The notes under the pieces: model-generated | Seen by the model: only the letters and a program-made list of their open reading frames with translations | What the model was told of the DNA's origin: nothing | Database searches by the model: none | Made by a program: the position numbers and the translations under genes | Assembly (NCBI RefSeq): GCF_002113885.1 | Contig: NW_018403602.1 | Span: forward strand, 247,001-311,000 | Origin: Mizuhopecten yessoensis | Lineage: Eukaryota | DNA length: 64,000 bases | Direction of reading: 5' to 3' | Part shown: piece after piece, positions 13,469-55,100 of the stretch | Position numbering within the stretch: the first letter of the stretch is position 1 | How the letters are laid out: each line of letters opens with the position of its first letter

Positions 13469-14994
13469 ATATGAAAAGACTGTAATGAGGATATTTACGA
13501 TGATTTTTATGTACAGGTACCCCTCAGCACTGCTATAATTACAGGTGACATATTAGCCCTGTAGTTACTTCACTTCTCACCATTATCCTCCTGTAATTGC
13601 CTCATTTAACATGCTCCGACAGTTCCCTGGCAACCAGACCTATCACATAGCAACAGGTATCTAACACACCGCTCCAACCTGATGGGCATATTACCATCGA
13701 AAAACAATCCTAACATAATGTGGTTAATTTGTCTATTTTTTCATATTGTCAACAAATTATATCCCTTCAGAAAATAATTTGTTTTAGCATAAATTTAATG
13801 AGAGATATAAAAATAGCATTCAGTTTTATTAGTTGATTGCTTATTGACATACTAACAAAGTGACTAAGATTGGTGATTTATTCAAATATTCTTACACATA
13901 AAATATACTTGGAAAGAAATTGTGTACAATCATAATTTGTTATAAGTGAGATTGACTATGGACAGTTCTCACAAATAATGGACATATATTGAAAGTTAAT
14001 GGTGCCTGGAAGGACAGTGAGACTGTTGTACAGTTCCCACAAGCTACTTATGGATGAACTTTGGTTTGTGGACAGTTACTACAAGTAATGGGCACACTTA
14101 CAATGTATATATATGTTGTCGATAGATTGGTTTAGTTTATGGACAGTTACCACAAGTAAGGGACACACTTTGTGCGTTGTCGATAGATTGGTTTAGTTAT
14201 GGACAGTTACCACAAGTAAGGGACACACTTTATATGTTGTTGGTAGATTGGTCCTCATTGTTTTGTCACACATTGTATGTTGTTGGTAGATTGGTCCTCA
14301 TTGTTTTGTCACACTTTGTAACTGTCACCCATTCATTATCTTTTGGTGTTTGTCGTAAAGAATGGTCAGGCGTAGTACAAGGCTGACAGAAGGAAACATC
14401 TCCTAGCCTGTTGGGTTTGGCAGAAGCATCTTTCTTGTACCAGCCGGTAACCTCTCGTGACCTCCTGACAGGCAGCAATCCTGTAATTAAGTTTTATCTC
14501 AGCTCTAACTGACTTTAACATCTCCAAAAGATTGGTTTGCTTTCTCCATGTTTTTAAGACTTTTTTCTTTGTTTTAATTTGTTGACTGATACATTGCTGA
14601 TGTAAACAAGATTTTGTTATTGACCTGGGCTGAAAATCGTTTGTTTATAGAGCAGGCCTCCAAATATCTTAGCTTCCACTAAAAAAAATAGGTGTTTCTG
14701 GAGTTGAGAGACAAGAAAACTCAAAGTCTTATTTAAGTCATCACACTGATAACACTGCCGATGTTTTTGTTTTTTTACTGGAGCTTCCACAGAATGTCTT
14801 GTTCTCTGACTGTACACGGAACATATCTAGAACTGCTATACTGGAAAAGTGGCAGGCGGAGAAAGGATAGAACCTGATAGAACCTGCGCTGTTGAGTGGA
14901 GAAAGAATGAGTAATGGGGGATATCAGGTTTTTTCTGTCTAAGAAACTTAATACCTAGCTATCTCATATTCAGAACACTTTCTTGTAACATTCC

Positions 14995-18314: not shown

Positions 18315-18415
18315 CACCAGGAACTCCGCCCCGCAATGTCCACGCCCGACCGATCAGCACAACTACCGTTATTGTCGAATGGCTGCCTCCAGAGAAACCC
18401 AACGGAATTATCAAG
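18315..18415 (+). CDS. Lar: Lar exon, FNIII-2 N-half ([34 protein letters not shown])
   Basis: acag| acceptor, phase 1 to 0. Weak donor AAG|GTTTTT, but it joins in frame to GYKIFYT. Confidence 0.9.
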
Positions 18416-21400
18416 GTTTTTTATACGGCCAATCACAAAATTATAAAAGCTTAACTAAGGGCAAAAATACCAAAACATTTGATTTGGGGGAAATCTACTG
18501 CATAATATTTCATCCAATTGAATAATAATAATGTGTTAATTTGCACTCAGAAAATACTCTTCTGACTTTTCTTTGTGACGTCTTCTAATAACCTCTTTCC
18601 TGTGTTTGTTGTGACTCATACATTTGTGACTTAATACATGTTTTGTCTGTGACAGTACAACACGCTTCTTCTGTGACTTTTGTGTGACCTGTTTGTGACA
18701 TTTTATCAGACATATTTGCAGACTTTTTATGCAAATTGACTTTTTGTGACCTGTTTCCTCCGACTCTTTGTGACCTGTTTCCACTGACTTTTGTGACCTG
18801 TTTCCTCCAACTCTTTGTGACCTGTTTCCACCGACTTTTGTGACCTGTTTCCTCCGACTCTTTGTGACCTGGTTCCACTGACTTGTTTGGACCGGATGTC
18901 CGATCTCTTTGTGACCTGTTTCCTCCGACTCTTTGTGACCTGTTTCCACTGACTTTTGTGACCTGTTTCCTCCGACTCTTTGTGACCTGTTTCTATGTAC
19001 GTTGGACAGGAAGACTTGTGACAAGTGAAGCTTAGATTTGCTAATTACATTTGTCCTTTGTGTGTCACAGTGGTAAGTACATGCAGCTATTCGCTATAGT
19101 TTTGTGATTACCTGTTATGTTTGTTTAGGTACATGGTTTTCGGATTAAATGAATAAATGAGGGTTACTACTTTCCAGAAGATTTTGAAATGTGACTGCTT
19201 TCTGCTGGCGTGTGACAACAAACCAATACAAAGTGGCAATGTGTTTGGAAATGTTACAACATGCAATAAAAATGGACAACACCTTTTAAATTTGACAAAA
19301 TGCCATTGAAATATAGCAACACACCATTGAAATGTGACAAAACACCATTGAAATGTGACAAAACACCATTAAAATGTCACAACCAGCTTTGACATGTGAC
19401 ACTGCACCATAGTCAAGTGTGACCTGTGATCACACACCATTGAAATGTCAACACAAAATCTCATTATAACATGCTTTCCTCTTTTCCAATTTTTTCAGGG
19501 CTACAAGATTTTCTACACACTAGATCCTGATCTTCCAATCATCCTGTGGAAACGACATGATGTCAACTCCGATAAGAATGTGGTGACCATCGAGAACCTA
19601 CAGGCTAATGTGACCTACCACATGTGTATCTTGGCCTATTCTAGCAAGGGGGAGGGGCCTGTATCCGATCTCATCCAGGTCATGACTCGTCAAGGAGGTA
19701 TGCGCCCCAATCCTGTCACTGTGAACACCCACCGACACCCTCTAGTGCTATGCCTCCATGGGGTACAGAATGCAAAGTACTCTCATTAGATCGAAAGTTT
19801 TTTTTCCCTATCGTCTCTAGAATGATGGACCATGTAGCTTACATGGTGGATTGGTAAATGATGTGAATGGTTGGTCTTGACATAGCACACCTCCGTTTGT
19901 ACTCAAACTCAGACTCCGCATCTTTTTGCTCGAGGTTTTGATAACAAACTGCATGAAAGTCTGAGTGCATGCCTGTATAAGGACTTTGTTAGTATGAAAC
20001 TGGATGATTACCCTGTCTCACTCACTACCGAGCAGACCACCGTCGGTGTGTCTCTCGCAGCGTATATCTAGCAGCATGTCCGTTACTTTCTCTGTATTGT
20101 TTTTATCGGGTACTATGTTGCTGAACGATATCTGTCAACCAAGAGATTTGGGGCATGCCGTGTTCAAATGGGCAACATTAAAAATGCCATGCTGTATGTT
20201 TTTTCGGTGATAATAATTATTGTGTTTTACATAGAATGCCTGCCATATGAATCACAGATATGTTTTGTACTGTCTCCATTATGTATTTACATATAACTAC
20301 TGGTACACTGATATACCCCCCACCATATATAGACCTGCTCAATTACCTCATTCGCCACAGAAATAGGTGGCTGTACCAATGTCTATAACTATACAAATGT
20401 AATAGCCCAATATATTTATATGTGTACATACTTATATTTATATCATAATACACCATATATATCTATATATAATACATATTTATCGATTATACACCAAATA
20501 TGGATATATACGTAGAAACCGCATATATTCCACATAATTCACACTATCTATAAAATCTTGATACACCATATATGGGCATATATATATTAACCTAATTTTT
20601 TAACCTTTTTTTGAAATATGAATATAAATACATATATATTTATTGACAAAAACATGTAAATATAAAAATGTGGTCTAAATAGCAAATATGATTCAAAAAG
20701 TATCAGATACTTAATATCACAATGTGTTCTATATCATTTGGTGCAAATTATTCAAAATTACTTTTTGTTCACCTTTTTTTCCTTATTCGTATTTTCTAAT
20801 TATTATCGACTCACATTTTACAACACAGTTAAAGTTAAGCGTATCAACATCACTACAAACATCTACAATTCTAGGACTTTCTATTTCCCTACCCTACAGT
20901 ATATCAAAAATTACAAACCTAGTCACTGCTATCAATATTACTTCACTGGTACAACCCAAACTGTCACGGTAAACTTCCTCCAAGGAATGGAATTTTAAAA
21001 ATGAAGCAGGACAAAAATGATTAAATATGTTATTATCGATTTTGGGAAAGAACACTGGTTTAATCATGACAAGTAAAATGAACAAAAACAATACTGAAAT
21101 TTAAAAAAAAAAAAAAAATCAAATTCATTCAATCCCAGAAATAGCATACTTTAAATTTACAAACTAGGTAGCCACCTGCATGGAATTGTACAATGCTGTT
21201 TATTACACACATATATAGATCTTGTCACAAGCATTTATATCACTGACAAACAAGTTTTATTTACCGAGTGCCCGTCCCGACAACAAACATGTGGAATGCA
21301 TCTCAATAACATCACCGCCATCACGTCTTACTTACTCACCCAGGAACTTGGTTTGGTGGAATATCAAAAACATTAGAAGAAATCATAACAAAAAAATCCA

Positions 21401-24400
21401 TATTTATATCAATTTGTTTTATATATTTTTTATGTTATCATATACCATATTATAAGTCCAGACAAATGAAAAACATTAAAAAGTACATTCTCTGCAGAAC
21501 AAATGATTGAAAGAATTCTTGATTATTTATTGTACATTGCAAGATAGAATAATTCAAACTATATTTAAAATAAATAATACTGATATATTTTAGTCTTGAC
21601 CATTCAAGTAATATCAAGCAGATACTTACTTCCGCATATAAATTCCTTTGAATGAAAAAGAAAATATTGATTTATTGAATATAGAAAAATAAATTTGATC
21701 TGTATTGGAAAGCATACAATACTTACATTTTTTTCCGATTTTGACAATTTAAATGATACTGTAACATGAATTGTGATAAACGTTTGGAAGAAGTCCACCA
21801 AACCTAGGTTTTGAGTTGACTTGTTTGCATAAGGAATCGATTGCATTTGAGATGGTCCATAGAGACCTCCATTTTAGTCTTCAGGACCCAACTGTGGAAA
21901 AGCTTGATGAACATGGCCACATTTGATCCACGGCCGTTTACGTACAGAGTTATCTACCTTACAACTAGAGTTGCCTACCTTTAGTTATGTTGTATCGTTG
22001 TGCAGGGAGGAACCACAAGATGTCCATGTTTTTTGTCAAATTATAAAGTTGTTGAAGGCAAGGCTTTGCTTTCTGTAGTAAAACATAATTGTGTGCTTTC
22101 ATGATGACAAAATTGTTTAAGGTAACTGTTTGTGAACTAAAGTTATCAACCTTAGCACACTCAACCTTAGACTAGAGTTGTCTACCTTGTGTAGGTAGTT
22201 AATATTTTGGGTTTTATCAAGTAAGGAAAGATGAATACAGTAGTATTTCAATGAATCTGAAAGAAAAACATGTATATTTAAATTAAATAGGTGAATTTAG
22301 TCTCAAATAAATAACTATTTCCTTCAGATAGAAATCTGACTAAAAGTTGAACTCACACATTGGTATAACTAAAGCTTACAATACATGTGCTTGTGATGCA
22401 TTCCACTTGCAAAACACAGGCCAATGGCCATGTAGCTGCGAAACGCAAAGCCCAAACCTGCTGCGCGTTCTCACGTGTCGCGACTGCGTACTGCGAGTGC
22501 GCCTATGCTCAAGCTTTTCCACAAGTGGGTGTATGCATTGCATCCTAAACACCGTAGAATAGGTATATACGTACGCTAGACCCTGTAGCTATATATAGCC
22601 TGCCACTGGGAGTTGCTGCAGAAGTCCGTGTGGTAGTTGAGTCATGTGACTGCCTGTAGCCCAATTATTTTGATTGCGTTCTTGAATGTGTTATTTGATG
22701 TGTTTGACAAATTCTGTGTTCGATCCTTCCAGCGCGAGATAGTCAATGTTCTAGGAAAACTTGTTTTCCCGGTAAGTTCGAGCCATAAAGTTATGGCACG
22801 CTAAATCTTGTATCTCCAGTGTTCTTCGGAGTTGTGTTCAATATTTTTCTCCAAAAATTTTGTTTTATCTGAAAATTTCATTGATGTCATTTTCTGCATG
22901 TTTCCATTTCTGATTCTGAATTTCATTCGTATATGACGCCAAATTTTAACTCCTTTTTAAATCTCTAAATATATATCAGTGTCATTTCTTCCGTTATATT
23001 TCAAAGCTTCAATTTCATGCTAGTGTTATTTTTCCAGGCAGTTAATTTTTAGGAAACAAAAAGAAGAAACCCAAACAAATAATAGTTTAAATGAATTAGA
23101 TTAAATAAAATGGTGAGATTCCATTTCTGTGAGATTGTTTAAATTATATGAGTGTTATACTCGTACGGTACCTGTTTTATCTTCCATTAATTGCCTAATG
23201 TGGGTCTGAACAAAATGGATGACTCTGCATCTGCTCGCTGCCTGCGATTGTTGTGTTTATTATGATTGCATACATATGTTATTATCCCCGCGCATAATCT
23301 CACAATACACGCCTATCACTGTAGCATGACGTAGCATCAGTTTTCGTAGTTCGTAATCTGCTCTGCATCTTAATGCGCGTCTCTCAACCTTTTTACGTTC
23401 ACCTTGTCACCTGCTCAGTGTTTGATAACAATTCAATTTGTATACATTTGGTCAAAATTCTCTGAGAATTCTTATTATATTGTTGATTAACTGTTAAAGA
23501 TAATTGATAATTCCATATTTCATCTGAAATGTTCGTTTTTTTCATGTTTCATCATCTATATACATTTTTTACTGTGAAAAGTTTGAATTATTATTCAACA
23601 TTAATTCTTTAATGAATTTATATTAATGCGAATAAATGTTGAATTTTAAAAGATGATTGTAATTTATTCAGAGAACCATGCTTGTAATTCAGCTAAGATA
23701 TTTCACAGTAATTAAGCATAATTTTGCACTATAGTTTCAAAGAGAAGATAACTGCATCTAAAGTATCTAGTAAAACACGAAGCGAAAAGCGCTAGCGATT
23801 GTGTTAGAGCAATAACGGCTGTCTGTTCACCAATGGTTCATGCTGAAGAACTATAGTCTGTATGAGATATGTCACAGCTGTGAGACTATAGCCTGTATCA
23901 GATTTCACTAATTGCTGTGTAGTCACATGATGTGCTGGTCACTGGTATTGAGCTGTCTATAACATGTAACTCATTTTAGCGTGATTTTTCTTTTTCCTCC
24001 ACCGTACCTGGGTACAGAGATTGTAGGTGAGCTGCCATTACCTAAACATAGACTTTTTCAGTTTATTTCTCCCGTTTATTTTGATTTTCTATTTCAGCAC
24101 AGACTTTTTAAGTGTATTTTTAAAAAAAGAAACAAAATAGCTAATGCAATTATATACATTGTACTTTGCCTTCCCTGAATACCAATATAATATATACCTA
24201 TAAATGATGTGCTAATCATGATCTAAAATGTGCATGCATCTTAAAATGATCTGGTTTATATTGTGTTCTTGTGAGAGCTGAAACACTAAGTCAGGTGGGC
24301 GTCAATAGACTGGTCCTCAACCACGAAGGAAGAGTCTGTCTAGTTAAATTAGGAGTGAAGGGAAGTAAAGTTTTTTTCTTTACTAATGTTTGTTTCAGGG

Positions 24401-27400
24401 GATAGTAGTAGCGGTAAGATTGCATTTTAAACTTTTTGTCTTGATCTTGAATTAACTGTCATGGAATTCATTAGTGCTGTATTAATTGATTGAAGCTTGT
24501 AAACAAAATCAGCTAAACAATGCATGATATTTACAAGTGAAATGTCAATATCAGTTAAACTCTCATAGCTATTCCTTTGGCAATGTTGGAATAGTGATAA
24601 GACCTTTCCTGTCCCGTAGAGACAGATGTATTGCAGTGTTTGGCATGGAGTTGTAGTGGAATTAACAAGGACTTGAATGTCTGTGTACTTCTGCATTGCT
24701 GAGGACTTACGAGCTGTCATTTTGATATGTTGATGTTAGTTATAGTAATTAATCTACTAATTTCTCATTAGTAGCTGTTTGATATGCATTTAATATTTGA
24801 TGAATTATATCTAGCTCACTTACCAGAGCATTGGGGGGGGGGGGGGGGGGGGGGGATAGGCTGTGCTGAACCTTAATATATATTTTTAGGAGCCAAAAAC
24901 AGCTTAATTTTACTTGATTAAACTTTTTGAGAAAGCCTTTTTTTGCAAACTAGAACACTGCACTCAATAAGTTTTTGACTATTATAAGGTTGAGGCATCT
25001 ATATGGAGTGTAAGCAAGGGGCCAAAAGGACTTACTTTAAATTCAACTTGTAGATAGAATCTGATGAAAGCTTTTGATCCCTAATGATAGCCTAATGACC
25101 ATTTGGGAACTATAAATTATATTTTTTTCTAATATCTAAATAGTTCAGTATAGTCAATGGTTTTTGTTGGAAGATAAAATCCTTACAAATACAGTGTTAC
25201 ACTTGTCAAAATATACATAGATAAAATCCTCAGGCTAATTGTTACACAGAAACAATATTGTTGTGAAGATATTTAAATTTACCAATATTGCTACCAATAC
25301 CTAGCCAACAAAAGTATGTTTAAGCCCGAAAAAAAATGTTTATATAGGTCAAAAATACTGCAGGTGAAATAGAGAGAGAATAAAGCCACTCAGTGCTACC
25401 CTTTACCTTGGTTCAGCGGTACCCTTTACCTTGGTTCAGTGCTACCCTTTACCTTGGTTCAGTGCGACCCGTTACCTTGGTTCAGCGGTACCCTTTACCT
25501 TGGTTCAGTGGTACCCTTTACCTTGGTTCAGTGGTACCCTTTACCTTGGTTCAGTGCTACCCGTTACCTTGGTTCAGTGGTAATCTTTACCTTGGTTCAG
25601 CGGTACCCTTTACCTTGGTTCAGCGGTACCCTTTACCTTGGTTCAGTGCTACCCTTTACCTTGGATCAGCGGTACCCTTTCCCTTGGTTCAGTGCGCCCC
25701 GTTACCTTGGTTCAGCGGAACACTTTACCTTGGTTCAGTTCTACCCTTTACCTTGGCTCAGTGCTACCCTTTACACCTTTGTTCAGTGCTGCTCTTTACC
25801 TTGGTTCAGCTGTACCCTTTATCTTGGTTCAGTGCTACCCTTTACCTTGGTTCAGTGCTAATCTTTACTTTGGTTCAGCGGTACTCTTTACCTTGGTTCA
25901 GTGCTACCCTTTACCTTGGTTAAGTTTTACTCTTTACCTTGGTTCAGTGCTACCCTTTACACCTTTGTTCAGTGCTACTCTTTACCTTGGTTCAGTGCTA
26001 CTCTTTACCTTGGTTGAATGCTACCCTATACCTTGGTTCAGTTTTACTCTTTACCTTGGTTCAGTGGTACTCTTTACCTTGGTTCAGCGGTACCTTTTAC
26101 CTTGGTTCAATGGTACCCTTTACCTTGGTTCAGTTTTACTCTTTACCTTGGTTCAGTGGTACCCTTCACCTTGGTTCAGTGCTACCCTTTACCTTGGTTC
26201 AGTGGTACCCTTTACTTTGGTTCAGTGCTACCCTTTATCTTGGTTCAGTGCTACTCTTTACCTTGGTTCAGTGGTACCCCTTACCTTGGTTCAGTGCTAC
26301 CCTTTACCTTGGTTCAGTGCTACTCTTTACCTTGGTTCAGTGCTACCCTTTACCTTGGTTCAGCAGTGCCCTTTATCTTGGTTCAGTGCTGCTACCCTTT
26401 ACCTTGGTTCAGTGCTACCCTTTACCTTGGTTCAGTGCTACCCTTTACCTTTGTTCAGTGGTACCCTTTACCTTGGTTCAGTGCTGCCCTTTACCTTGGT
26501 TCAGTGCTACCCTTTACCTTGGTTCAGCGGTACCCTTTACTTTGGTTCAGTGCTACCCTTTACCTTGGTTCAGTGCTACCCTTTAGCTTGGTTCAGTGCT
26601 ACTCTTTACCTTGGTTCAGTGCTACCCTTTACCTTGGTTCAGTGCTACCCTTTACCTTGGTTCAGTGGTACCCTTTACCTTTGTTCAGTGCTACCCTTTA
26701 CCTTTGTTCAGTGCTACTCTTTACCTTGGTTCAGTGATACCCTGGTTCCATTGTGTAAAATATGACAAGTACTGATTTTTTTAGTATTATACTATAATTC
26801 TGTCATCAGGTCTCTGTACATCTAGAGTTCTGACTCATCAGGTCCCTGTACATATTATAGATATTAACCCATCTAGATCATGTAAGTGTTTGAATGTAGG
26901 TAGTTCTGTCATCAGGTCTCTGTACATATTATAGATATTAACGTTACTCATCTAGATCATGTAAGTGTTTGATTGTAGGTAGTTCTGACATCAGGTCCCT
27001 GTACATATTATAGATATTAACTCATCTAGATCATGTAAGAGTTTGATTGTAGGTAGTTCTGTCATCAGGTCTCTGTACATCTAGAGTTCTGACTCATCAG
27101 GTCCCTGTACATATCATAGATATTAACTCATCTAGATGATGTAAGTGTTTGATTGTAGGTAATTCTGACATCAGGGCCCTGTACATATTATAGATATTAA
27201 CGTTCCTCATCTAGATCATGTAAGTGTTTGAATGTAGGAAGTTCTGTCATCAGGACTCTGTACATATTATAGATATTAACTCATCTAGATCATGTAAGTG
27301 TGTGATTGTAGGTAGTTCTGACATCAGGTCCCTGTACATATCATAGATATTAACGTTACTCATCTAAATTATTTAAGTGTTTGATTGTAGGTAGTTCTGA

Positions 27401-28140
27401 CTCATCAGGTCTCTGTACATGTCATAGATATTTACTCATCTAGATCATGTAAGTGTTTGATTATAGGTAGTTCTGTGATCAGGTCCCTGTACATGTCATA
27501 GATATTAACCCATCTAGATCATGTAAGTGTTTGAATGTAGGTAGTTCTGTCATCAGGTCCCTGTACATATCATAGATATTAACGTTACTCATCTAGATCA
27601 TGTAAGTGTTTGATTATAGGTAGTTCTGTGACCAGGTCCCTGTACATGTCATAGATATTAACCCATCTAGATCATGTAAGTGTTTGATTGTAGGTAGTTC
27701 TGTCATCAGGTCTCTGTAAATATTATAGATATTAACTCATCTAGATCATGTAAGTGTTTGAATGCTCTCATAATAACACTTTAACAGTTTATTTAAGATG
27801 CTAAAGCGAGAAAAAAATGTATAAATTCATGCTAGCACAAAAATGCACACTATTTTTGCCATTGAAGTCATGACATTTGACTTTCACAAACGGGTCATTT
27901 TGCTTACTGTGTATTTGAAGTTAATGAAAATGGAAAATGTCATTTTAGAGAAGAAGAAAAATTGAGAAAAATATCTGCACATCTGGTATTATAAAAAAAA
28001 AATCTATAAAAGAGTGTTTTCATTTTGTTTAAATTTTTTGTTTGTTTTCTTTTTTTTGTATCATATTTGAACAGAAAATAAAGCAACAATGAATATTTTT
28101 TTTCATTCAGTGTCACATTATCAGTTAATAAACAATTATN

Positions 28141-28180
<40 letters not shown>

Positions 28181-31100
28181 TTTTTTAGTGATTTTAAGAT
28201 TGAACATTTTATTTGTTGTTGCTTTTTTCCTGTTATACCTAATTCTAACGTGTGTTGATTGTTTGATAAAAATGAAAAGAAAAAAAATCTTTGAAATTTC
28301 TCAAATTTTCATTTAACATTATTAATGTTTCACATATTTTGACCATCGCAAGAGAAATTTTGATGATTTTTGTTAAGCAGAATGTATCAATATATTGATG
28401 CAACAACGTGAATTTTGTAAAAGAAATAGATTTTCCTATAAGGAAACAGAACTTAGCCAGCATGCTGATTCCACTTGAGCTCAATGCATGACAAGTTTGT
28501 CACGTTTCCACGGTTACAAAAAAATATTAGATGTCATGAGAATCTCATGCTTTGTAAATTAAAGATTGGACCCCCCACAAATTATATAAAAAAAAACATG
28601 AAAATAAATAATAAAGAATATGATTTATAGCAGATTTTTGTAAACATCCATTGATACAAATTTATATATTCAATAAAAAAAATATCAAATAAAATTCTTC
28701 TTATAGAATTTATATATTTTTTAGACAATTTGCTGGGAAGTCCACCTATAATCTATATATTGTAATGACCTAAGACCGGCTGAGTCCATGTTGTACTACA
28801 GAGGGGACAGGTTTCTGCTACCTCTGTTGACACCAAATGACCTAGCCTAGTTTTAGAAAGATAAGAAATCTACTGTAGTAACAGTTTGTAATTTTTTAAT
28901 TCATAAGAATAGATTTGCATAACTTTTACTGATGTGGAAGCCTGCAAAAGGCTATCAAATTCTTACTGATAAAGCGTGCTCGCCCCACCGCGAGCGATCT
29001 GCGGGCGCAATACTGTTGCTACAAATGCAGGTGCGATGGGCTTCGCTTCAACTGCAAAGCGCCTTTCTAGCCTACACTGTCTGAGTTGGCTATACCTTAG
29101 TGAAGTCACTAAGCCTAAGGCCCAGTGTCTCAACTGCAGGATGCCAAACGCATCAATTATTCTGTGTAATCACAGGATTATACATTCTTTACATGTCAAA
29201 ACTACAACATTTCAATCTTGTCAGTTTTATGTTTATGATTAAAAAATATCTGTTAGCTTTTCAAGAATTACATATATATTTCAGTTCAGTTAGACATCCT
29301 ATATCTCTTAGCCTTCCTATCGATAAAATTTAAAATAAAATAGTTTTCGACATATATTTACCAAGTGATTGTTGCTACTTTTATTCCTCATATGTTGTTA
29401 TTTATTTGCGCCTTTTTTTCGATTTAACAGTGCCACTTCAGCCCAAAAATTTGCATGCGGCTGCATTGTCGCCCAACCGTATCGAAGTGACGTGGGACCC
29501 ACCAGAGAACCATCAAAGTGTTATAAGCTACAGGTTATATTTCAATGATTCGTACCGTCGCCAGAGTGCCCATATCACTATAGACCCGCCTGTGACCCGT
29601 TTTCGCCTGACCGATCTGACGCCAAACACACTCTACCACATCCAGGTGTCTGCCGTGTCGACGAAGGGTGAGGGCGCCCACACACCTACGATCCAGGTCC
29701 AGACCCGACAGTTTGGTATGTGTTTTCCACTGTACATGTCTTCTGTTTTGATATTCATTATTTCCTCTTTTTATGTGTGATTGTACCCGTACTTCATGTT
29801 TGGATATACCTTAGTCGTTGAAAAAAATTTATGCTTTGTTTTATTTTATGTAATAAAACGTATAAACCTTCATTGTCATAAAACTTTAATGTGAATTTAT
29901 TTCCCTGATTTTGTGACGTGAGGTGACATTTGACCTAGCTGTGGTTTCAGTCTTCCTTCACAGATTTCTTTCTCTCCGTGTTTTCCTCCCCACTTGAGGC
30001 GGTGTCTCTGTGAATTCTTTCTTTATGGTGATTTTACCAGGTTGTCATTGTTTTTTGCTTTTTTTGATTTTCACAAAAAAATGTGACCTTTTCTACATAT
30101 TCATGATTGTTTTTCTTATATATATATGTATATCTGTCATCTTTTTATCTCCTTTCTTTGTCTTGTTTACATGTTAATATCAATATCTGTTGAAACTTGT
30201 TTGGGAAATGACATCTTCAGGTTCAGGCAAGCCCAAGCCATTTGGTAAGTCTGTTATAAAAAACTTTGTTTTAAATTTTACTTTCACAGCCAGCATAGAC
30301 TTACATTTTTTTCCCTCTCTTATCGTGTCCGGTGAATACAGTTTGTTTCCAAGCTGACAGGGGAGAGCACTCCTCCTGTTTCCAGACTGACAGGGGAGAG
30401 CACTATTCCTGTCCATTCCCTAATCCTACCCAATCCCAGAACTCCTCAGACCCAAATTTTAAACATTTTGAAGAAAAGAAATGTTTTCCCATTATCATCC
30501 CCATTCTAAATCTCATAATATTCAATGACATTGAATTGGTTTTTTCGTTGTGAATCGCGACCACATTTACCCTGCTTTATGGTGCGTTAACCTCACCAAT
30601 AAAGGATCTATAACTGTAGGATGTTGACCAATCTGCTTTGTGTAAACCACTGAAGTTGCTCCATTTTTATTGATATTGTTTACTCCCGGTTTTGGGTCGA
30701 TATGTCAGTGGTTGGATGTATATTTATCAACACACTGCTTACACGTGCACCACGTTGCTGGACCGCTATAATAAAGTTTTCTATTTCCACGAGTAATCTG
30801 CTGGTTGTTTTTTCTTCTTTTATATTTATACATCACCTTAAACCCACACAAAGCGTACCATATAGTTTGGATTTCCGGTTCACATGTGACTTCACCTTCA
30901 GTGTTTGTTCACCGTGTCTGATCCACCCCATCTTCAATGTTTCCTTGTTTTTTGGTTTGGTTGTGGAGCTATTTTGACTTGATAATTATCTCCATGTAGT
31001 TGGTCGGTTTATTTGCTCCGTGTTTGTTTATAGATTTTAACTGTACTCTTTGTTGCTGTAGGTTATCAGAAACTGTCTTTCTGCTTCTTTGATTTCTTGT

Positions 31101-43100: not shown

Positions 43101-46100
43101 ATGACATAGAATGATGTCGGTAAATACTGTCACCCCACAGAAATGGTTACCATTCATGTATATGAAATAGAATGATGTCGGGAAATACTGTCATCCCACA
43201 GAAATGTTTACCATTCATGTATATGACATAGAAGGATGTCGGTAAATACTGTCATCCCACAGAAATGGTTACCATTCATGTATATGACACATTCTGCAAT
43301 ATCTATTATGTGATTTTTTGTATGTTTGTTTACAAATCAACATGATGAGGTAAACATGTTTGTTCCCGGAGTAACACCACAATGTATGTACAGTACTTGT
43401 CTAATGAAATTCCTTCCTCGTTTGAAGTGTTCGTTTGATTGGCTCAGCATGTCTGTTTTACAACTAACATCTTTTATATATATATATGTAAACCAACTTG
43501 GTGTGAAACCAGTGTAGGAGAAAATTGACACCATTCTGAACCAGACATCATATATATACAGTATATATACTTGTATATATGTATATATCAGAACTAATGC
43601 GATGAAATTTTTGTACCGTTTTGACTTCAGTGTTTTTTATATTGAATATATTACAATATATATCTGATGTGACCATGAATGACTGATTTCATTATATCAA
43701 TTGCATGACATCTTTTTTTCTCAGCGACCAGATAAACATACACCACCACGTAGGAGCCGATTCCTTTTTTTGGTTACAGCTCTTGTTTTAGACCAGAATT
43801 CCTAGTCAAGGATATAGCATTATCCGTGCAAATGCTGCCTTTCTTTACTACAGAGTCATTGCATGCGACAGCGCTGCGGTGCGCAGTTGAAATAAATATT
43901 GCTCAACCATTGGGGAAATTAATACAAATTTGATCTGAATATAAATCTAAATCTAAATTGTGTACAATTAACAGGAGGACAGTTTATACTACATAAAGTA
44001 AGAAGTGCTATTGTAGAAAAGAGAAAATTGTCAAAATACCTGGAGACTTAAAAAAAAAGTGTCTGAAAAGTATACGTGTAACTCTTCTGACTAGAGGGAA
44101 TTTTGTTTGTAGCTCGTACAAGCTGCTTTACGGAATAGCATATTCTGAGACGTAGATTCTAGTTGAACAGTCTTTTCTGCCATTTTTTGTTTTCTTTCTA
44201 GAAACTGTTTGGAAGCTTTCTGTGATCCTAGATTAGACCTAGATATGTATATACATTATATACTACACCTTACACCTTGGTCTCGTGTAGCCTAGATATG
44301 TATATACATTATATACTACATAACTTACACCTTGGTCTCGTGTAGCATAGATATGTATTTGGGTGTGTGCACCAACCAAATCCAAAAGATAACATCAAAA
44401 TTGCTACATGATAGAAAATTAAAAGTCTGGCTGAGGGGTTCAGTCTTATTTTGAAATCTCCATTTTGGTTGTTGGTATGGCAACTTGGATGCTGTGCAGC
44501 GAGCTAGGCTGTGAAAACCACATAGCTTCTGTGATGTGGAAACTTTATCAGACGCTTTATCAGCAACCCAAGTCCACTTAAACTAGACACCTATACTCCA
44601 ATAAAATAAAGGATCTTGCACTTCCTGCCTTCTTGATGATTTTTGTTTTAATTTACATTTGTTTAATTGATTATTTTTAGATATTTATTTTTTTGCACTG
44701 TTCAGCAAGTCAGCAAAGATTTCTTTTTGGAAAATCCTAGTTTTGCAATTTACTAGATATTTTTTTTAGACTTTATTTTTGAACTACATCATATCTTTTA
44801 TATATATATTTTATGAATTTTTCAACTGCGTTCGTTTTTTATATTTACTAGATTTTTTAATTGTATTCAAGAGCAAATTTTTTGCCTATGAAATTAATTT
44901 GGAGTAGTTTAGTTTGTTATGTTTATATTATGCATTTTGGAATTGATTTTTTTTTTTTAATATTTTAAATAATTGCATGTGAAAAATCATCATTTGGTGC
45001 TGCATGGACAGAAAGTTTTGTTTAGTTCTGTTTCATAAAAATGTTATTCTTCCCAGAAGCATGATCGAGTGCATTTTGATACTTTTCACACAAGGAATGT
45101 GCATTTTTGAACTTAAACAAGAAAACTTTGAGATTATCAAAATGTTTGCCTCTTTTCTGAGTTTGCGTGCTTGTGTTTTTAAAGCTTGTTGATGCACAAA
45201 GTATATCAGTTAAAATATGCCCAGTATAGGAATTGCTTTAGACAAGCGCTTACAAACTATTATCTATCTCTTACTCGGAATAGGCGTTGACTGGCAATGT
45301 CATGTGAACTCAGCTCTAAAGATCAAATTTTCTAGTTCTGGTTCTTTTGTAACTATAATAAGTGACAAATTCTCATAATAAAAGGTAACAAATTCTACTA
45401 CAATAAGTCTCAGATTCTACTACAATAAGTCACAGATTCTACTACAATAAGTCACAGATTCTACAACAATAAGTCACAACTTCTACTACACTAAGTAACA
45501 GATTCTACAACAATAAGTTACAGATTTTACTACAATAAGTCACAGATTCTACTACAATAAGTCACAGATTCTACAACAATAAGTTACAGATACTACTACA
45601 ATAAGTCACAGATTCTACTACAATAAGTCACAAATTCTACAACAATAAGTTACAGATTTTACTACAATAAGTCACAGATTTTACTACAATAAGTCACAGA
45701 TTTTACTACAATAAGTCACAGATTCTACTACAATAAGTCACAGATTCTACTGCAATAGGTAACAAATTATACTGCAATAAGCCTGTTATTCAACTGTAAC
45801 AAGACACAAAATGTATTGCTAGCATTAAGAATGTACTGCAGGAAACTGAATAGGAAAGTTAATACTTTCGGCACACAGGTCAAAAGGTTAGTTTATCACC
45901 ACAAATGCAATGGCCTTTTTTATGGAGGTCAAGTTCATCGCAACTGGACAGTAAACTGTAGTATATGTTTTCTGACCAAAAAGCGTATTGAAAAGGAATT
46001 TTAGTCTCCTTATAAACAATGTTCCTTAGAAACACCAAACCATTATTGTCTGAAAACTATATCCTAGGCCTCCATTTGGTGACACCTTTCTGCCTAGTCT

Positions 46101-49100
46101 ACACTGATAGCTGTTTTTCAACTCAACTGACAACTTGAGATTTTAGGATTTTCGGAATAAAAATCCAGAACTGTCATTTTACTTAATAGAAAAGTTAGAC
46201 AGAACTACAAAAATGTTCTTCCTGTTTGAGAGCTTATTTCACATGAAGTTGTCTGTATATATACTGGTGTACATGAAGTTGTCTGTATATATACTGCGTG
46301 TAGATCTTTGGCATTCACTGCTGACATACAACACTAATACCAGAACTCTATTTATAGCTCTTTGTTTGTATAAAATATGCAATGGAAGCCATGTTGTTTT
46401 TGTTACAGTTCCTGGGCCTCCCAAATCTGTCACAGTTGAAGCCATTAACTCGACCACCATATTTGTTGAATGGCGACCCCCAGAGACACAGCGAGAAAAT
46501 GGAATTATACGTGGCTACCAAGTATACTGTGTTGTTGTAGACAGCAAAAATCGGCCAAAGGCTGGTACAGAACGTATCTTTGACACAACTGATGGTAATC
46601 GACGGGAAGCGGTCATCACTAGTCTTGACCCTGCCACCAAGTATTCTATCAAGGTGGCCGGTTATACAAGGAGGGGCGACGGTCAGCGCAGTAAAGAGAA
46701 GTTCATCGTCACATCAGGGGCAGGTAAGTCCGTATCTATAGTGTACTGCAGGCTATATTCTTACTGGAAAGCCTTTCCTTGAAATACATGCTTAAGATGT
46801 CCAGCTGTGTGATACAACTTGAAATGTACATTTTATAAAGTAACCTTAATTTTTGGTCATGTCATTTACAGTTCCCACTATGCCACGGAACCTTAACGTG
46901 GAATTCCTGGGCGAAGATCCTCCACAAGTTCAGGTCACATGGCAGCGGCCGCGAGAAACCCACGGCAAGCTGGCCGGCTATAAGGTGTTCTGGGGACGGA
47001 GAGGGGAAAAATACTCGCTGGTCAATCTAGGCCCCATACATCATGCTTACATCTCGGATATCTTAGGTACGTAACAAGCAATGGAATCTGGTTAATCTGA
47101 CATCTCACCAATCTTGGGCTCATCAGTTCAAAAAGGTTGCATTCCATTTGTTTAATGTCAAGAGTACAGTATGTGTTTTCAACAACAAGTCTTTAGTACT
47201 TTCATTCCTTCTAGGAGATTCTTCAGACTATATATATAAGGAAAATACAAAACACAAAGACTACAATTCGCCCGTTTTGAGGCTCTAAGGAAAATATATA
47301 TTCTGTATTTCTGGGGTTTTCAGACTAGTAAGTTTCACATAATATCTATGCTAATATCTGTAACTTGTTTCATAATTGATGTAATATAAATGAAGTTTAT
47401 TTATAAATTCTCAATATAAAAAAATAATATTGTCTCCCTTGTCAATAATTGTAGCAAAGGCAATCCTAGTAAAGCCTTGATATTCTGCCTCTTTTTTCCA
47501 GCAAACATTAACTGAAGTCAATGAGGTTTTGTTTTGTGATTAGATAGTTGAACCCATTATACCAGTTTTATTACTGAAAATGGTATCAATAGAGTAAAAT
47601 AGAACCTTGTGCCTTGTGTTTACAAATACAATAGAATACCAATTATCCTAACCCTGATTATTCAAACTTTTGATTTATCTTTTCAGAATTTGACTTTAAC
47701 TAATTGTATTTTACTAGCTGCACGTAAAACAGTTGTGACTGTTTAGCCATAATGTAAATCTGCAAATCTGAAAAATACATCAGGTTTATCCTTATCCTAA
47801 TTTAAATATTGATTTGTATTGAACATCCAAAATTTCCACAAATCATCAAATAAACAAGTTTAACTTCACATCATATCACAGATCACATTCGTAAAATTCC
47901 AATAGAACTTATTTAAAGTTTGCATTTGTTTTGTTCAACTTAAGAAATTCTTTGTTCAAAGGAGAACTCTTGCATGATTCCTGAAATAAACAATTTTGTC
48001 TTTCATCTTTCATGATATTTAAAAATGGGGTGGTGAATGAAAATGTTCCTGTTTTACACTATATTGTAATAAGTGTTTTCTTCCTCCAACAGACAAAGGA
48101 GCCACGTACGAATTCCTTGTTGTTGCACGAAACGAGGAGGGTGACGGTGTGAGAGCGTCTCAAATTATCACAACACCAGATGGAAGTAAGTGTCATGCGC
48201 TGCATTCATACTGCCTAGTCGGCTCAGCGCTGCAGCAGAGAAGACGACGGCCAGCTCACTCAGCATTACTGCACGTCAGCGTGGTCACACCGCTGTGGTG
48301 GCCATATTTGTTGTCGTAGCAACAGCTCATTGTCCCTCAGTGTCGCCACACCCCCTCGGTTTCCATGGAAACCAGCTTTTTGAAGGCTCGACGTTTTCTT
48401 TAGTCTGCCTTTGACTTATTAGTTTGTCACTTTGTTTTTTGCGTTCGCTTTAAAAATATTTCAAAAGCTATTTTCATGTTGTGGCCTTTTTTTACTTGAC
48501 TGTTGTTCTTGTTAAATTCAACTAAAGCTGCTTTTATGTATCTACAATTTTCATTTGAATTACTTTAAGCCTTTTTTAATTCCGAATCTTATTGAAACTT
48601 ATATTCTTTTTTCAGCAAACATCTTGTTAAAAACTCTTTTTTGCGTTTATTGTTTAGAAAAATATTACATTCCTTTTCTGAAATTATTTGCATTTGATCT
48701 TTTTATAATTAAGAACATGGATGTTCGTGCTTTGAGTACAGACTTGTTGGTTCTAAGATTTCCGGTCCATCTGTGTTTTATTTTGTGGTCATTGTTGGTT
48801 TTTTTTATATTTTGATTTGTTTTATTAATTGTACTTGCACATTCAGAGTGAGAAAGGCAACACCTCTTTGTGTCTGAAAGATATTGTACTGAAAAGTTTA
48901 GAGATAAATAAAATGACTCATATTTCCGTTCAGCATCCTGTATATACATGGTGAATGTTTTCAACTCTAGCATGTTGAATTGAAATTAAAGAAAAGAGTT
49001 GTCTTGACAAAAAATTTCAATTTTTTCTTTTTGGTGTCTCTGGTATTCTGCTTCGTAATTTTAACTTTCCGAGATTGTTGGCTGAAACAAATGTTCACAA

Positions 49101-52100
49101 TTTTCTAACAAAAATTTAAAAAGATGCATGTAAGTGTGATTTTTACATTGTCATGAAATTGAACATTTTTTAAAGATTTTGGACATGATTTTTTTCTCTT
49201 TTATACAAAATTATAAACATATTTTTGATTTTGAAGATTTGCATTCATTTAAAAGATGTAATAAATATACATATTTTGTTATGCTATACTTCTCAGGAAA
49301 CTTTATATAGAAATCTCAGCTGTTAACTCATTTAAGCATAGATCTTTAAAAAAAATAGTAAGGAAACAACGAAGTGTTTGACATGAGAAAACACATATTT
49401 TGTGTTATACTAACTGGCACCATGTATGATCACTCCCAATAACACCCCTCACAATTTTTCATTTTTCCAAAAAATGTACAGAGGATTTCATAGGCATTAG
49501 AAGTTTGGTAAGAAACCGTACATTAAAATAAGTTTGATGTCTGAATGAATTAATTATCTGAGGCAGTCTGGTACTACAACAGTGTAAAAAGATTTTTGAA
49601 AAGCAAAAACATATGTAAGAGGGATATTTATATAAGAATGTGCAAGTATAATAGTAAAACAATCCATTCAATATTGTACCTGCCTTTTTGTTGTATTTTT
49701 TTGGTGTATATTTTTCTCTCTTTTCTCCCCGTCCTGCCTATAGTCCCCGATGGGGCCCCGCAGAATTTCACTGCGACGGGGCTGACAGAGACCAGTGTGA
49801 GGCTGGAGTGGGACTTGCCAGCTAAAAAACTGCAAAATGGCGAGATAATCATGTATCAACTTATCTACCATAAGATGGCCGACCCCACTGATACGGAGGA
49901 CCTAAACATCACGGGCATTCAGCACGACGTTCACAACCTCGAGATGAATACCGATTATGTTTTTCAAGTTAAGGCCTACACAAGTCAAGGAGCAGGTCCA
50001 TGGACTGTGCAGCACCCGTTCCACACGTTCGGACCAAGTATGTTAATAAAGAGATGTCAATCAAGGGCAGATAACCCTTGCCGCACTGCGATGGGTTTGC
50101 AGCAAGCTTTGCAGAAAGACTTTATTATTAATATGCGTTAACCTGTTACTACCTGCTATACTAACACCGGGAGCATTGACCGAGAAACTTATCATTGATA
50201 TGCAAAAAGCATGTGTTGTTTTGTGGTTTGAATTGATACTAATTATATGACGTATTAATACATTAAGTTTGTAATCCAGAACATATTGTTATAGGCGACC
50301 AGAAGGAGTACAGCTTCTGATACATGATCATCACCCCCCTCGGCTTTCCTTACTGAACAGCAATTCCCTCACCCACCCGTGTTTTCATCCCTGATCCCTG
50401 CCATTAGTCCATTCATATCCCAGCCTCTCACACTCTACGTCCCCTAACACCCTACATTCCCCAACCCTTATACCCTACATTCCCCAACCCTTATACCCTA
50501 CATTCCCCAACCCTTATACCCTACATTCCCCAACCCTTATACCCTACATTCCCCAACCCTTATACCCTACATTCCCCAACCCTTATACCCTACATTCCCC
50601 AACCCTTATACCCTACATTCCCCAACCCTTATACCCTACATTCCCCAACCCTTATACCCTACATTCCCCAACCCTTATACCCTACATTCCCCAACCCTTA
50701 TACCCTACATTCCCCAACCCTTATACCCTACATTCCCCAACCCTTATACCCTACATTCCCACTCCTTACACCCTACATTCCTCCCCACACACCAAACACT
50801 CTCTACCCCTTACACCCTATATTCCCAACCCTTAACACCCTATATTCCCCACCCCTTACACCCTATATTCCCCATCCATTACACCCTATATTCCCCACCC
50901 ATTACACCCTATATTCCGACCCCTTACACCCTATATTCCCCACCCATTACACCCTATATTACCAACCCTTAACACCCTATATTCCCCACCCCTTACACCC
51001 AACATTCTCTACCCCTTACACCCTATATTCCCCACCCCACACACCCAACATTCTCTACCCCTTACACCCTATATTCCCCACCCCACACACCCTACATTTC
51101 CCAACCCTTATAAACCCTACCCATACCCACTTGATATCCAATGATTTCATCTCCACCTGACACCCCACCCCTCCTTTCCATACATGTACCACCTGTCAAT
51201 TTCCAACACCTCACCAAATTCAATAACTCACCCCATATTGTTAACACGGATACCAAAATTGTTTGGGTCTTTTTAAAACTCTGTTTTTCAGTAGAAATTG
51301 CTTCACAAAGCGATATTGTACCCATAGATTAGTTGTTTCATTGTTTTACAAGTATTAGTTATATCTAGCTATTATATAGATGTTGTGATACACTTTTCTA
51401 ACTTTGGATGACCTCTGTTTGACCTTGGAATGACCTCCAAAGCGTGTGTTGCCATCCTCCTTTTATAAATGATCACCATGCCCCCCCCCCCAACACGTGA
51501 ATTGATGACATCACACAGTTTTGCGGGCACATTTGATGCACAACTGTTTTTATTAGGCCCTAAAGAATCGCAGCATTTTTTAGTTTTGTGTTATTTATCA
51601 TTTTCTTTTGAAAGTACTCTACGCGTGTTTTTGCAGAGCAGTTTGTTAGATGACTACATCGTTGTGCTGGTTTGGACTGAGTTGGTGTTTTGATATTATT
51701 TGATTTAAGCACATCCATTATAATCAAATCTTTGTTAAAATCATAAAAGATCTGAAAGAAAAAGTCAGCTCCATTGCATGATCATAACTATAAGTGATAT
51801 AAGTTCTTGTTTGGGTTTTGGATTCTATTTCTTGCCTCTGATATCAAATGTTACTGAATTACAGAGAAATTAAACAGTCAATGAATAAATTTTAGATTAT
51901 TTTAATGAGAACAGTCTCACTATGAATCGTAAACAAATCTAGATAATGTTGTTGAAAAAGTGCACTTTTCTGAAAATGCATTAGTCAGCAGGATTTGAAA
52001 ATTGTACTAGTAATTGTGTTTATTAATGCTAGATTTCCTCTCAGGAGAGGTTAGTGCCCCTACCAGATTTCCTCTCAGTAGAGGTTAGTGCCCCTACCAG

Positions 52101-55100
52101 ATTTCCTCTCAGGAGAGGTTAGTGCCCCTACCAGTTTTCTTCTCGGTAGAGGTTAGTGCCCCTACCAGTTTTCCTCTCAGGAGAGGTTAGTGCCCCTACC
52201 AGTTTTCCTCTCAGGAGGGGTTAGTGCCCCTACAAGTTTTCCTCTCAGGAGAGGTTAGTGCCCCTACCAGTTTTCCTCTCAGTAGAGGTTAGTGCCCCTA
52301 CAAGTTTTCCTCTCAGTAGAGGTTAGTGCCCCTACCAGTTTTCTCTCAGGAGAGGTTAGTGCCCCTACAAGTTTTCCTCTCGGTAGAGGTTAGTGCCCCT
52401 ACCAGTTTTCCTCTCAGTAGAGGTTAGTGCCCCCATCACTTTTCCTCTCGGGAGAGGTTAGTGCCCCCATCACTTTTCCTCTCAGTAGAGGTTAGTGTCC
52501 CCATCACTTTTCCTCTCGGTAGAGGTTAGTGCCCCCATCACTTTTCCTCTCGGGAGAGGTTAGTGCCCCTACCAGTTTTCCTCCCAGGAGAGGTTAGTGC
52601 CCTACCAGTTTTCCTCTCAGTAGAGGTTAGTGCCCCTCCCAGTTTTCTCTCAGGAGAGGTTAGTGCCCCTACCAGATTTCCTCTCAGGAGAGGTTAGTGC
52701 CCCTACCAGTTTTCCTCTCAGTTGAGGTTAGTGCCCCTACAAGTTTTCCTCTCAGTAGAGGTTAGTGCCCCTCCCAGTTTTCTCTCAGGAGAGGTTAGTG
52801 CCCCTACCAGATTTCCTCTCAGTAGAGGTTAGTGCCCCTACAAGTTTTCCTCTCGGGAGAGGTTAGTGCCCCTACCAGTTTTCCTCCCAGGAGAGGTTAG
52901 TGCCCTACCAGTTTTCCTCTCAGTATAGGTTAGTGCCCCTACAATTTTTCCTCTCAGGAGAGGTTAGTGCCCCTCCCAGTTTTCCTCTCAGGAGAGGTTA
53001 GTGCCCCCATCACTTTTCCTCTCAGTAGAGGTTAGCGCCCCCATCACTTTTCCTCTCGGTAGAGGTTAGTGCCCCTTCCATTCCCCACATCGCTGACATT
53101 TACACCTGCTTTGAATGCTGACTAACTTTTGAAAGGACCCTCTTGCTTACCATTATCACTGCATGACACAAATTAACAACTCAAAGGTTTGAGGCTGTTC
53201 AAATGTTTATTTCACGCCCCAGACACTTCTTTTAAATGTCCAGCTGAGAAATGTTTGTTTCAACAGAAATTGATTTGTTTTCATCTCGGAAGCAATTCCT
53301 ATGATAATGTGAAAAAGGTGGGCAGATTATTTATCTTGAATAATTTTGATTTTAGCTTTTAAAAGCAAAAAACTGAAAGTATACTTAATTTCATTTTTTT
53401 GTTAATTTCAGTAAATATCTGTTAAAATAATTATGATGGGTGCAGCAATGTTTAGGTGCCCTTGCCGTTCACAGAGCACCCACTGCACCTCCCAGACCAC
53501 ACACATCTTAACCGATATGGATTAAAATATATCATACGTCTTCTGTAAATTTCAGCTGTTATTTATAAAAACAATACTACACCTAGGTAGTCATCAATGT
53601 TGTCCTAAACGTCTTTAGAATATAAGAGACATTTTTGTGATGCGATTAAATTTTGTCTAAATATGTGTATACCTAGTATATTTGAGTATCTAATATTTTA
53701 TTGATGCCATCTCATAAATAAAATACAGAAAATATTTAATGTCCAACACAAATATCATTTGAATTTTAATGATATAGTACATCTTTTAACCAGTTTTTAC
53801 CAAAAAGATTTCCATCATAATAATTTGTATTACTGTTTTATTTTTTTAAAGAAAGAAATATTATATTTCCCTTTTGAAATAATTATTTATTGGTATTTAA
53901 GAGATGTTTTGTCCATCTCCAGAAATAAGAACATTTATATAACAATTTTCTAGAGTAATTCTTCCACTTAAGAAATAATACTATATTGTGAGATTGCTTT
54001 CATCCGTCATTAGAAATAATAACATGTGGTTATTTATTTTTTTCCTCTCCTCACGTGCAGAACCTTATGGTAATTATCTCGTTGTCAATACCAGCCTTAT
54101 GTCAACAGTTTAGATGTTGACAGATTGTGGTATCAAGCTTAGGTCGGGGTGTCAGGGGACACAACTCTGCCATATTTGTCGTCCTGTTTCGATGGAGTGC
54201 ACTCGTAGTGTATTTAATTTTTTTGCACTGCAGTCATATTATTTATTAATTAAAGGGCTATCTTTTGTCACTTTGATTCTTATTTCTAAACATTGCTTAC
54301 ATTTCATTCTAGTTTTTCCCTGAGTCACATGGCGTTTTATTTTTATATTATAAACAGTGTTATATGGGTATTTGGTATTAGATTGGCAAAGTTAAACAAT
54401 TATTTACAAGGTATATGGGTTTGATATTATAGTTTAGAATTTCTTGGTGAAAAGCCTCTGCCAGGTCATTAGATGTAATACTTGGAACGAGAGACAAGAA
54501 AAGGCCACACCAGCACCAGTCCGGGGTGTTAGTCAAGTCCCTTTTCTATAATGTATATTTACAACAACAAAACAGATAAATTTCTTGCTTGATTTTGAAA
54601 ATGTGATTGAAAAATTACACATTGGTATTTTGAATTTGTTAAAAGAAGTAATTGAACTGTTGAGAATTTCATGAGTGACAGTGTTTAACCAAATTTAGTA
54701 CGTTTGTTTTAATGGCTCCTGTTTTCTGCATGTCATGGGTTTAGCGAGCACCTATGTGTTTAACCTACACCTAATTGTCAACACCCATTTTTATGATGCA
54801 TGCTGGGGGGAAAGTTGTATAAATGTCTTACTCATTTTGTTCAGTTTGTTTGTAGTTATTCAAAATATGCATAAAATGGACCAAATTGACCAGCTATGTC
54901 CCATTTGACTGGACACTGGTCAACTTAACCAATAAGGTTATTGTTGTGTAGAGGGTCACTTATTGTTTGTGTTTCGTCATGTACCCATAAACACTGTACT
55001 GTGCTAACTGTAACGTAGTGTTGGTAAATCAATTGATGAATCTCTAGCCACTCCCTTAAAGTCAAGCCCACATCGGCCCTAAATGACTCAATTTAGTTGA

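Follow-up and report, generated by a model that had tools for sequence, protein, structure and literature searches.

In vertebrates, a few residues encoded by micro-exons decide the partners of LAR receptors, and to our knowledge only the exons of the Ig region and of FN5 have known effects in these receptors. The mini-exons meA, meB, meC and meD of vertebrate LAR-RPTPs are located at Ig2, between Ig2 and Ig3, inside FN5 and in the juxtamembrane segment, respectively (PMC8711739), with meA being built from two adjacent micro-exons (PMC8711739; PMC13080001). In addition, skipping of the fourth fibronectin type III domain (FN4) is already known in LAR-RPTPs. Further comparable systems are the neural microexon programme, which relies on the eMIC of Srrm3/4 and a UGC near the acceptor, exons regulated by Rbfox proteins, and exons controlled by RNA bridges or by docking/selector pairing as in Dscam. 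Here, these systems are compared with the gene for Lar, a LAR-type (type IIa) receptor tyrosine phosphatase, of the scallop Mizuhopecten yessoensis, of which the central part is encoded in a window of 64,000 nucleotides (nt; NCBI RefSeq assembly GCF_002113885.1, contig NW_018403602.1, positions 247,001 to 311,000). All positions given below are those of this window, and all features are on its plus strand. The reading preferred here, to which a probability of roughly 60% is assigned, is that the ectodomain of scallop Lar is subject to regulated, coupled cassette splicing at two levels, namely the length of the hinge between FN2 and FN3 and the number of FN domains.

Judged by its sequence, the gene is Lar, as had been proposed in an earlier note on this DNA. 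The plus strand encodes the part of a LAR-type receptor phosphatase that reaches from FN2 to D1 (FN2 to FN9, the transmembrane region and the D1 exons), with the Ig exons and D2 being located outside the window. The FN exons are 100% identical to full-length Lar-like RefSeq and GenBank proteins of M. yessoensis and about 90% identical to Lar-like proteins of Pecten, Argopecten, and Ylistrum; the best relatives with solved structures are PTPRS, PTPRD, and PTPRF. Receptors of this type combine Ig domains and tandem FNIII repeats with a single transmembrane segment and two PTP domains. For all sequence searches, single exons or stored proteins were used as queries. When 50% representatives were searched with a single exon, most matches were multi-FNIII proteins, and the seed ortholog P0019 was also obtained. 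The introns between FN domains are all in phase 1.

The intron between FN2 and FN3 contains three short exons that can be joined to a phase-1 donor common to every variant of this linker, the donor of the second FN2 exon (19499-19697). These are mini-exon A (22733-22771), which has 39 nt and encodes 13 residues including two cysteines, micro-exon B (24018-24026, 9 nt), and micro-exon C (24399-24413, 15 nt). A fourth unit, micro-exon F (54061-54069, 9 nt), is located in the FN7/FN8 intron. These four are real micro-exons, which leaves the seven candidates of the earlier note divided: A, B, C, and F are confirmed by isoforms or contigs and lie, as had been claimed, in FNIII linkers (FN2/FN3 and FN7/FN8); candidate E and a larger candidate at 20829 fail; and candidate D, conserved but without a transcript, falls in between. 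A is annotated in the RefSeq sets of Mizuhopecten and Pecten, only together with B, and is retained in Ylistrum, where its flanks are 99% identical. B is used alone or after A. Both exons are present in the Mizuhopecten RefSeq models X1-X4 and X7 and both are absent from the GenBank model, whereas in Pecten most models contain A and B and model X5 contains B alone. C is annotated only without A and B, and a 12-nt ortholog of it is found in the Pecten X4, Argopecten, and Ylistrum X1 models. The use of C is further supported by RNA run X1, in which one contig end joins position 19697 directly to FN3 and another runs via C into FN3. Spliced junctions of this kind are impossible from genomic DNA of this locus, so the evidence for C holds although the run is only presumed to be RNA. 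A, B, and F are taken from RefSeq models, which we assume to be based on RNA-seq.

Run X1 also contains unspliced contigs across 20568-24800 at a depth of 21-28 (133 for the exon) and none at 19794-20567, and run X21 has one read pair near 22350-22700 in the intron. This intronic signal may represent pre-mRNA, DNA carry-over or an intronic transcript.

The splice criteria by which the candidates had been chosen are weak by themselves, and transcript-level support was therefore sought for each. The six short units are indeed bounded by AG and GT, multiples of three in length and stop-free in the phase-1 frame. The accompanying warning about chance AG..GT pairs was justified, as a scan of those 20.4 kb that could be aligned to locus L001 of Ylistrum balloti revealed 30 units of this form in sense and 15 in antisense orientation. 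Ylistrum is the species on which all statements about nucleotide conservation are based, and 5 of the 15 antisense units are retained in it, so that splice signals together with retention in one species are insufficient as proof. Splice-site scoring alone did not separate real from chance units. Many false AG/GT units originate from intronic tandem-repeat arrays (10860-13500, 25370-27800, 33500-37500, 50400-51150, and 52500-53070). In the comparison with a related species that the earlier note had suggested, splice sites and frame turned out to be retained in A, B, C, D, and F and lost in E and in the candidate at 20829. Candidate E (32015-32074) was rejected because its donor is weak and because donor and frame are lost in Ylistrum. 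The larger candidate (20829-20948) was also rejected, having a weak acceptor (1.3 bits), no good in-frame donor, a Ylistrum counterpart with stops and no junction.

Candidate micro-exon D (30221-30244, 24 nt) retains its first acceptor, donor, and frame in Ylistrum. There, 21 of the 24 nt are identical and two of the three changes are at third positions; the stronger second acceptor (30227) and the long AG-free zone are gone. D is absent from every model and read examined, and no fragment of a scallop transcript that spans D, E or F emerged from short-protein searches in which the FN3 exon and FN2-FN8 served as queries. The chances that D is a real exon are nevertheless regarded as evenly balanced, because the same intron houses mini-exons in Mytilus, oyster, and Biomphalaria. 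Sites and frame of a further 12-nt AG/GT unit in the FN4/FN5 intron (44351-44362) are retained in Ylistrum although its flanks show low identity, and the unit is without transcript support; inserts at the FN4/FN5 linker occur in insects and in Lineus.

In Mizuhopecten and Pecten, four states of the FN2/FN3 linker are annotated: none, B, A+B, and C. By this choice within a single phase-1 intron, the hinge would remain unchanged or be extended by 3 (B), 5 (C) or 16 (A+B) residues. A alone, A+C, B+C, and A+B+C are absent from the RefSeq sets of the two scallops. In these sets the X-numbers fall with protein length, and this allows the missing forms to be placed by rank. In Pecten, an isoform with A+B+C (1976 residues) or A+C (1973) would be ranked ahead of X1 (1972), and one with A alone (1969) or B+C (1964) between X2 (1971) and X3 (1961), but no such isoform is present. 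For Mizuhopecten, the same four combinations (1972, 1969, 1964, and 1959 residues) have no slot among X1-X4 (1967, 1966, 1960, and 1957). An isoform with both FN7 and F, which would outrank Pecten X1, is absent as well. From these absent isoforms we infer an annotated grammar in which A is used only together with B, C never with A or B, and F only in place of FN7. At the level of annotation, not all cassette combinations occur, and the up to 64 linker combinations envisaged in the earlier note would be reduced to about four hinge states and one domain-replacement switch. Judging from the annotated models, the ectodomain would be better described by a hinge with about four states, an FN4 that is present or absent, and an FN7 with three states.

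Alternatively, each real micro-exon could be chosen independently, with the annotation having overlooked the rarer forms; this would amount to eight hinge states multiplied by F and D. Such freedom exists elsewhere: full 2x2 sets of inserts at the FN2/FN3 linker are annotated in Haliotis rufescens and Octopus sinensis, and all eight meA3/meA6/meB variants of vertebrate PTPRD are used (PMC13080001). B and C are 372 nt apart, too far for steric hindrance, and none of the conserved duplexes that exceed their controls would explain the mutual exclusion of B and C, for which separate cell types can only be guessed at. On the other hand, the same four combinations are missing in two separately annotated scallops although they would rank among the longest isoforms, FN7+F is missing in Pecten, and the two FN2/FN3 inserts of the chiton never occur together. 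A free code is thus considered improbable, and since E fails, it would never comprise 64 forms.

At the second level of coupled splicing, FN4 and FN7 are whole-domain cassettes, which had been overlooked in the earlier note. The FN4 exon (39423-39731) has a weak acceptor and is skipped in Pecten X10 and in models of oysters, mussels, snails, octopus, chiton, and Lingula. The FN7 exon (49744-50037) is skipped in Pecten X8 and X9 and in models of Mytilus, Mya, and Mercenaria. Pecten X8 leads from FN6 to FN8 via a 3-residue insert that matches F, X9 shows the same skip without an insert, and X1 contains FN7 without F; in Pecten, F is thus annotated only in place of the skipped FN7, where it would act as a 3-residue spacer. 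Replacement of a domain by a mini-exon recurs in other molluscs. In Mya, the FN7/FN8 intron likewise contains an exon, of 21 nt, that is annotated only when FN7 is skipped, and in Biomphalaria a 33-nt exon in the FN3/FN4 intron is annotated with FN4 skipped. The literature searches yielded no report of a dedicated mini-exon replacing a skipped FN domain.

Control of these choices is proposed to involve Rbfox-type proteins acting on conserved UGCAUG and long-range duplexes over the branch regions of FN4 and FN7. Among 618 intronic hexamers compared between Mizuhopecten and Ylistrum, the Rbfox motif TGCATG is the most conserved (15 of 17 sites versus a background of 20.8%). Conserved sites follow A at a distance of 124 nt and C at 108 nt, and another precedes FN4 by 158 nt, which is the arrangement of conserved intronic UGCAUG near an exon that is typical of Rbfox exons. 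Judging from these sites, Rbfox-type proteins probably control splicing at this locus. Within 30 nt upstream of their acceptors, A, B, C, and D have no UGC, contrary to what applies to eMIC-dependent exons, and the UGC at F belongs to the acceptor itself and is missing in Ylistrum. The starts of the introns after FN2 (19700-20300) and FN6 (48186-48330) are 85-91% identical to Ylistrum and probably regulatory; two conserved TGCATG are found at 19950 and 19966.

FN4 and FN7 are preceded by AG-free zones of 183 and 87 nt (150 and 93 nt in Ylistrum), and for each of these zones a remote conserved arm pairs with the 5' edge in both scallops. Upstream of FN4, 32480-32496 pairs with 39253-39269 over a distance of 6.8 kb; the 3' arm marks the 5' edge of the 183-nt zone and overlaps the TGCATG at 39265. 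This duplex comprises 17 base pairs (bp) in the window and 23 bp in Ylistrum, with a change from G-U to G-C. Upstream of FN7, 48817-48844 pairs with 49636-49663 at the 5' edge of the 87-nt zone, and the duplex exceeds its controls (-28.7 versus -21.2). The 3' arm likely covers the branch region, and pairing that hides this region would favour skipping of FN4 and FN7. The acceptors of the constitutive exons FN3, FN5, and FN8 have no stem above control. In oyster, a different duplex is found at a similar offset before FN4 (-36.8 versus -21.3 for the control), which fails the perfect-stem test.

Two further duplexes precede A. In duplex 1 (21340-21362 with 21794-21816), two one-sided changes in Ylistrum preserve the pairing, and the energy is merely at control level. 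Duplex 2 (21884-21918 with 22500-22533) is 100% identical in Ylistrum versus 73-77% in its flanks and shows no covariation; its 3' arm is located about 200 nt upstream of A within an island of 98% conservation. This island of about 450 nt (22450-22900) around and upstream of A is more similar to Ylistrum than the coding exons are, and its constraint exceeds the needs of one 39-nt exon. No Rfam match was found in 19700-25300, nor in the island. In addition, two GC-rich conserved arms (22465-22510 and 43851-43900) could pair over 21 kb, with -33.8 and -28.9 in the two scallops and -24.7 for the best control. This pairing adjoins duplex 2 and would loop out the exons from A to C together with FN3 and FN4; a direct connection of FN2 to FN5 is found in a Physella model. 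It may also be a chance match of GC-rich islands.

With regard to the protein, the idea of the earlier note that the inserts affect a hinge gains outside support from the crystal structure of Ig1-FN3 of human RPTP-sigma, in which FN3 is folded back and the FN2-3 linker has been suggested as a flexion point (PMC4239663). In AlphaFold predictions of FN2-FN3, both domains are kept and A+B forms an unstructured coil of low confidence, with the predicted TM score (pTM) decreasing from 0.75 to 0.62. The inserts likely tune the hinge length and the reach of the Lar ectodomain; as flexible spacers, they would alter the bend and the reach of the ligand-binding Ig tip. Such a spacer role fits their loose sequence conservation.

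The inserts could instead be binding or blocking epitopes, as is meC in FN5 of vertebrate LAR, with the cysteines of A forming a disulfide loop or a dimer link. There is a precedent, as a 9-residue exon in FN5 of LAR abolishes binding of laminin-nidogen (PMC2133008). The two cysteines of A are retained in three scallops, and a short motif resembling Pro/Val-Ile-Phe/Thr-Asp recurs in inserts of abalone, Biomphalaria, octopus, and oyster. However, A, B, and F have substitutions at first and second codon positions among scallops, C differs in length, and mollusc inserts range from 2 to more than 30 residues. Moreover, A is embedded in the 98%-identical island, and retention of its cysteines may therefore reflect constraint on the RNA. 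An epitope function is accordingly rated as doubtful, if somewhat less so than a free code.

The FN2/FN3 linker is a site of optional inserts in many molluscs, including oysters (five states in Magallana gigas), Ostrea, Mytilus, four abalones, Gigantopelta, Pomacea, Babylonia, Biomphalaria, two octopuses, and a chiton. In genomic sequence, the corresponding intron of oyster contains three AG/GT exons, of 78 nt (or 12 nt in an inner form), 12 nt, and 9 nt. An exon of 12/9 nt with two acceptors in tandem is found in Pomacea, and one of 60 nt in Biomphalaria. The encoded peptides differ widely in length and have little sequence in common; given the short motif that recurs in some lineages, individual exons may be homologous. 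Outside the molluscs, the nemertean Lineus has a fixed FN2/FN3 insert in all 8 of 8 models. None of 54 arthropod proteins has an insert at this position; 5 of the 54 have a 3-residue insert in the FN4/FN5 linker.

These differences in sequence between lineages, the many species whose models have no insert, and the frequency of chance units would all be compatible with tolerated splicing noise, that is, functionless cryptic exons that preserve the frame in a flexible linker with a phase-1 intron. Against this, identity between genera amounts to 85-99% in the flanks of A and B, which equals or exceeds that of coding exons (roughly 80-90%), and inserts are annotated in isoforms of at least four scallop genera. 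Noise would also have to account for the fact that the FN5/FN6 and FN6/FN7 linkers are free of inserts in the mollusc models read, whereas FN2/FN3 inserts occur in many lineages. This explanation is very unlikely. Tentatively, and with clearly lower confidence than coupled splicing in scallops, a wider scheme can be considered, in which an ancient length code at the FN2/FN3 linker of molluscs, conserved in position and largely free of sequence, and a duplex-driven switch of a domain for a spacer would jointly set the reach of the receptor by cell type.

Several observations weigh against coupled, regulated splicing as proposed here. Exon use is derived from annotation and one run, and the coupling from isoforms that are missing. 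The check for junction reads suggested in the earlier note was positive for C, with inclusion and skip contigs in run X1, while the raw RNA of three runs covers the gene at only about 1-2 reads and showed no joints, giving neither inclusion levels nor phasing; at this depth, no junctions of A, B, and F were seen in reads. The combinations missing from RefSeq may simply be rare forms, and the listing lacks three models (Mizuhopecten X5 and X6 and Pecten X6). As few aligned sequences cover the A+B insert, low values in the predicted local distance difference test (pLDDT) are expected there, and the decrease in pTM could have the same cause. With regard to control, the FN4 stem scores 15.5 versus 15.0 for its control in the window (22 versus 16.5 in Ylistrum), the changes in the duplexes are one-sided and pair-keeping only, in a comparison of two related scallops, and no stems of the FN4/FN7 type were found in Mya, Pomacea, and Biomphalaria. 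Finally, the FN2/FN3 insert is absent in models of venerid and myid clams, Littorina, Patella, annelids, and Lingula.

The remaining exons of the ectodomain in the window are the constitutive first exon of FN2 (18315-18415), the FN3 exon (29431-29715), the FN5 exon (46409-46723), the two exons of FN6 (46872-47066 and 48093-48185), the FN8 exon (55857-56144), and the two exons of FN9 (56430-56539 and 58425-58638). The window has an N at 28140, which was kept unfilled. At 60054-60260, models X1 and X2 differ by one juxtamembrane serine both in Mizuhopecten and in Pecten, and the window has no tandem AG at the acceptor near 60260 as a source of the extra serine codon. Short scallop isoforms (P0273 and P0278), whose first exon is located outside the window, have their own N-terminus and FN1 and no Ig domains, and long scallop models join Ig3 directly to FN2. 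FN1 is treated as a cassette in models of abalone, Biomphalaria, and clam. Isoforms of Mytilus and Ostrea (P0290, P0202, and P0317) seemingly differ in their juxtamembrane and transmembrane segments, which look like alternatives. Comparison of P0271 with P0270/P0272 and of P0283 with P0173/P0279 revealed further optional inserts beyond the window, namely one of two lengths at the Ig2/Ig3 (meB) position, an Ig1/Ig2 linker exon common to many molluscs, and an N-terminal insert.

Compared with the known systems, micro-exon splicing in the LAR family is not new and most of the exons are already contained in automatic RefSeq models; the news is their pattern. The FN2/FN3 hot spot of molluscs, the domain-replacing mini-exon, and the duplexes did not turn up in the literature searched. 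Searches on micro-exons of Lar in molluscs or invertebrates and on long-range RNA structure in molluscs, which covered few subscription papers, returned nothing relevant. With the vertebrate LAR-RPTPs, scallop Lar shares the family and short, frame-preserving ectodomain cassettes, and models of scallops and abalone have an optional insert at the meB position. The linkers FN2/FN3 and FN7/FN8 are different from the positions of meA to meD, as the earlier note had stated. Unlike the vertebrate mini-exons, the mollusc peptides are poorly conserved between lineages and the scallop choices look coupled. Skipping of FN4 in molluscs resembles that known from LAR-RPTPs, but molluscs also skip FN7 alone, some with a replacement mini-exon. 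The insert of 9 nt in the FN4/FN5 linker of insect Lar is likewise a linker micro-insert, in another linker.

Scallop exons of 9-15 nt resemble eMIC-dependent microexons in size, in being multiples of three and in their conserved flanks, but A to D have no upstream UGC and that of F is unconserved. With Rbfox- and duplex-controlled systems they share conserved UGCAUG and complementary intronic arms 0.4-6.8 kb apart. In contrast to pairing in Dscam, the arms cover what is presumably the branch region of whole-domain cassettes, and no competing set of selectors was found around B and C. Scallop Lar thereby offers mutable RNA elements, namely Rbfox sites and three to four duplexes, for studies of splicing control in molluscs. 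From chiton to octopus, molluscs place optional residues at the proposed bend of the ectodomain, with freely changing sequence, and molluscan Lar thus permits a direct test of whether a synaptic or adhesion receptor is tuned solely by the length of a linker. If this holds true, the molluscan code would be one of geometric reach, distinct from the Ig-interface code of vertebrates.

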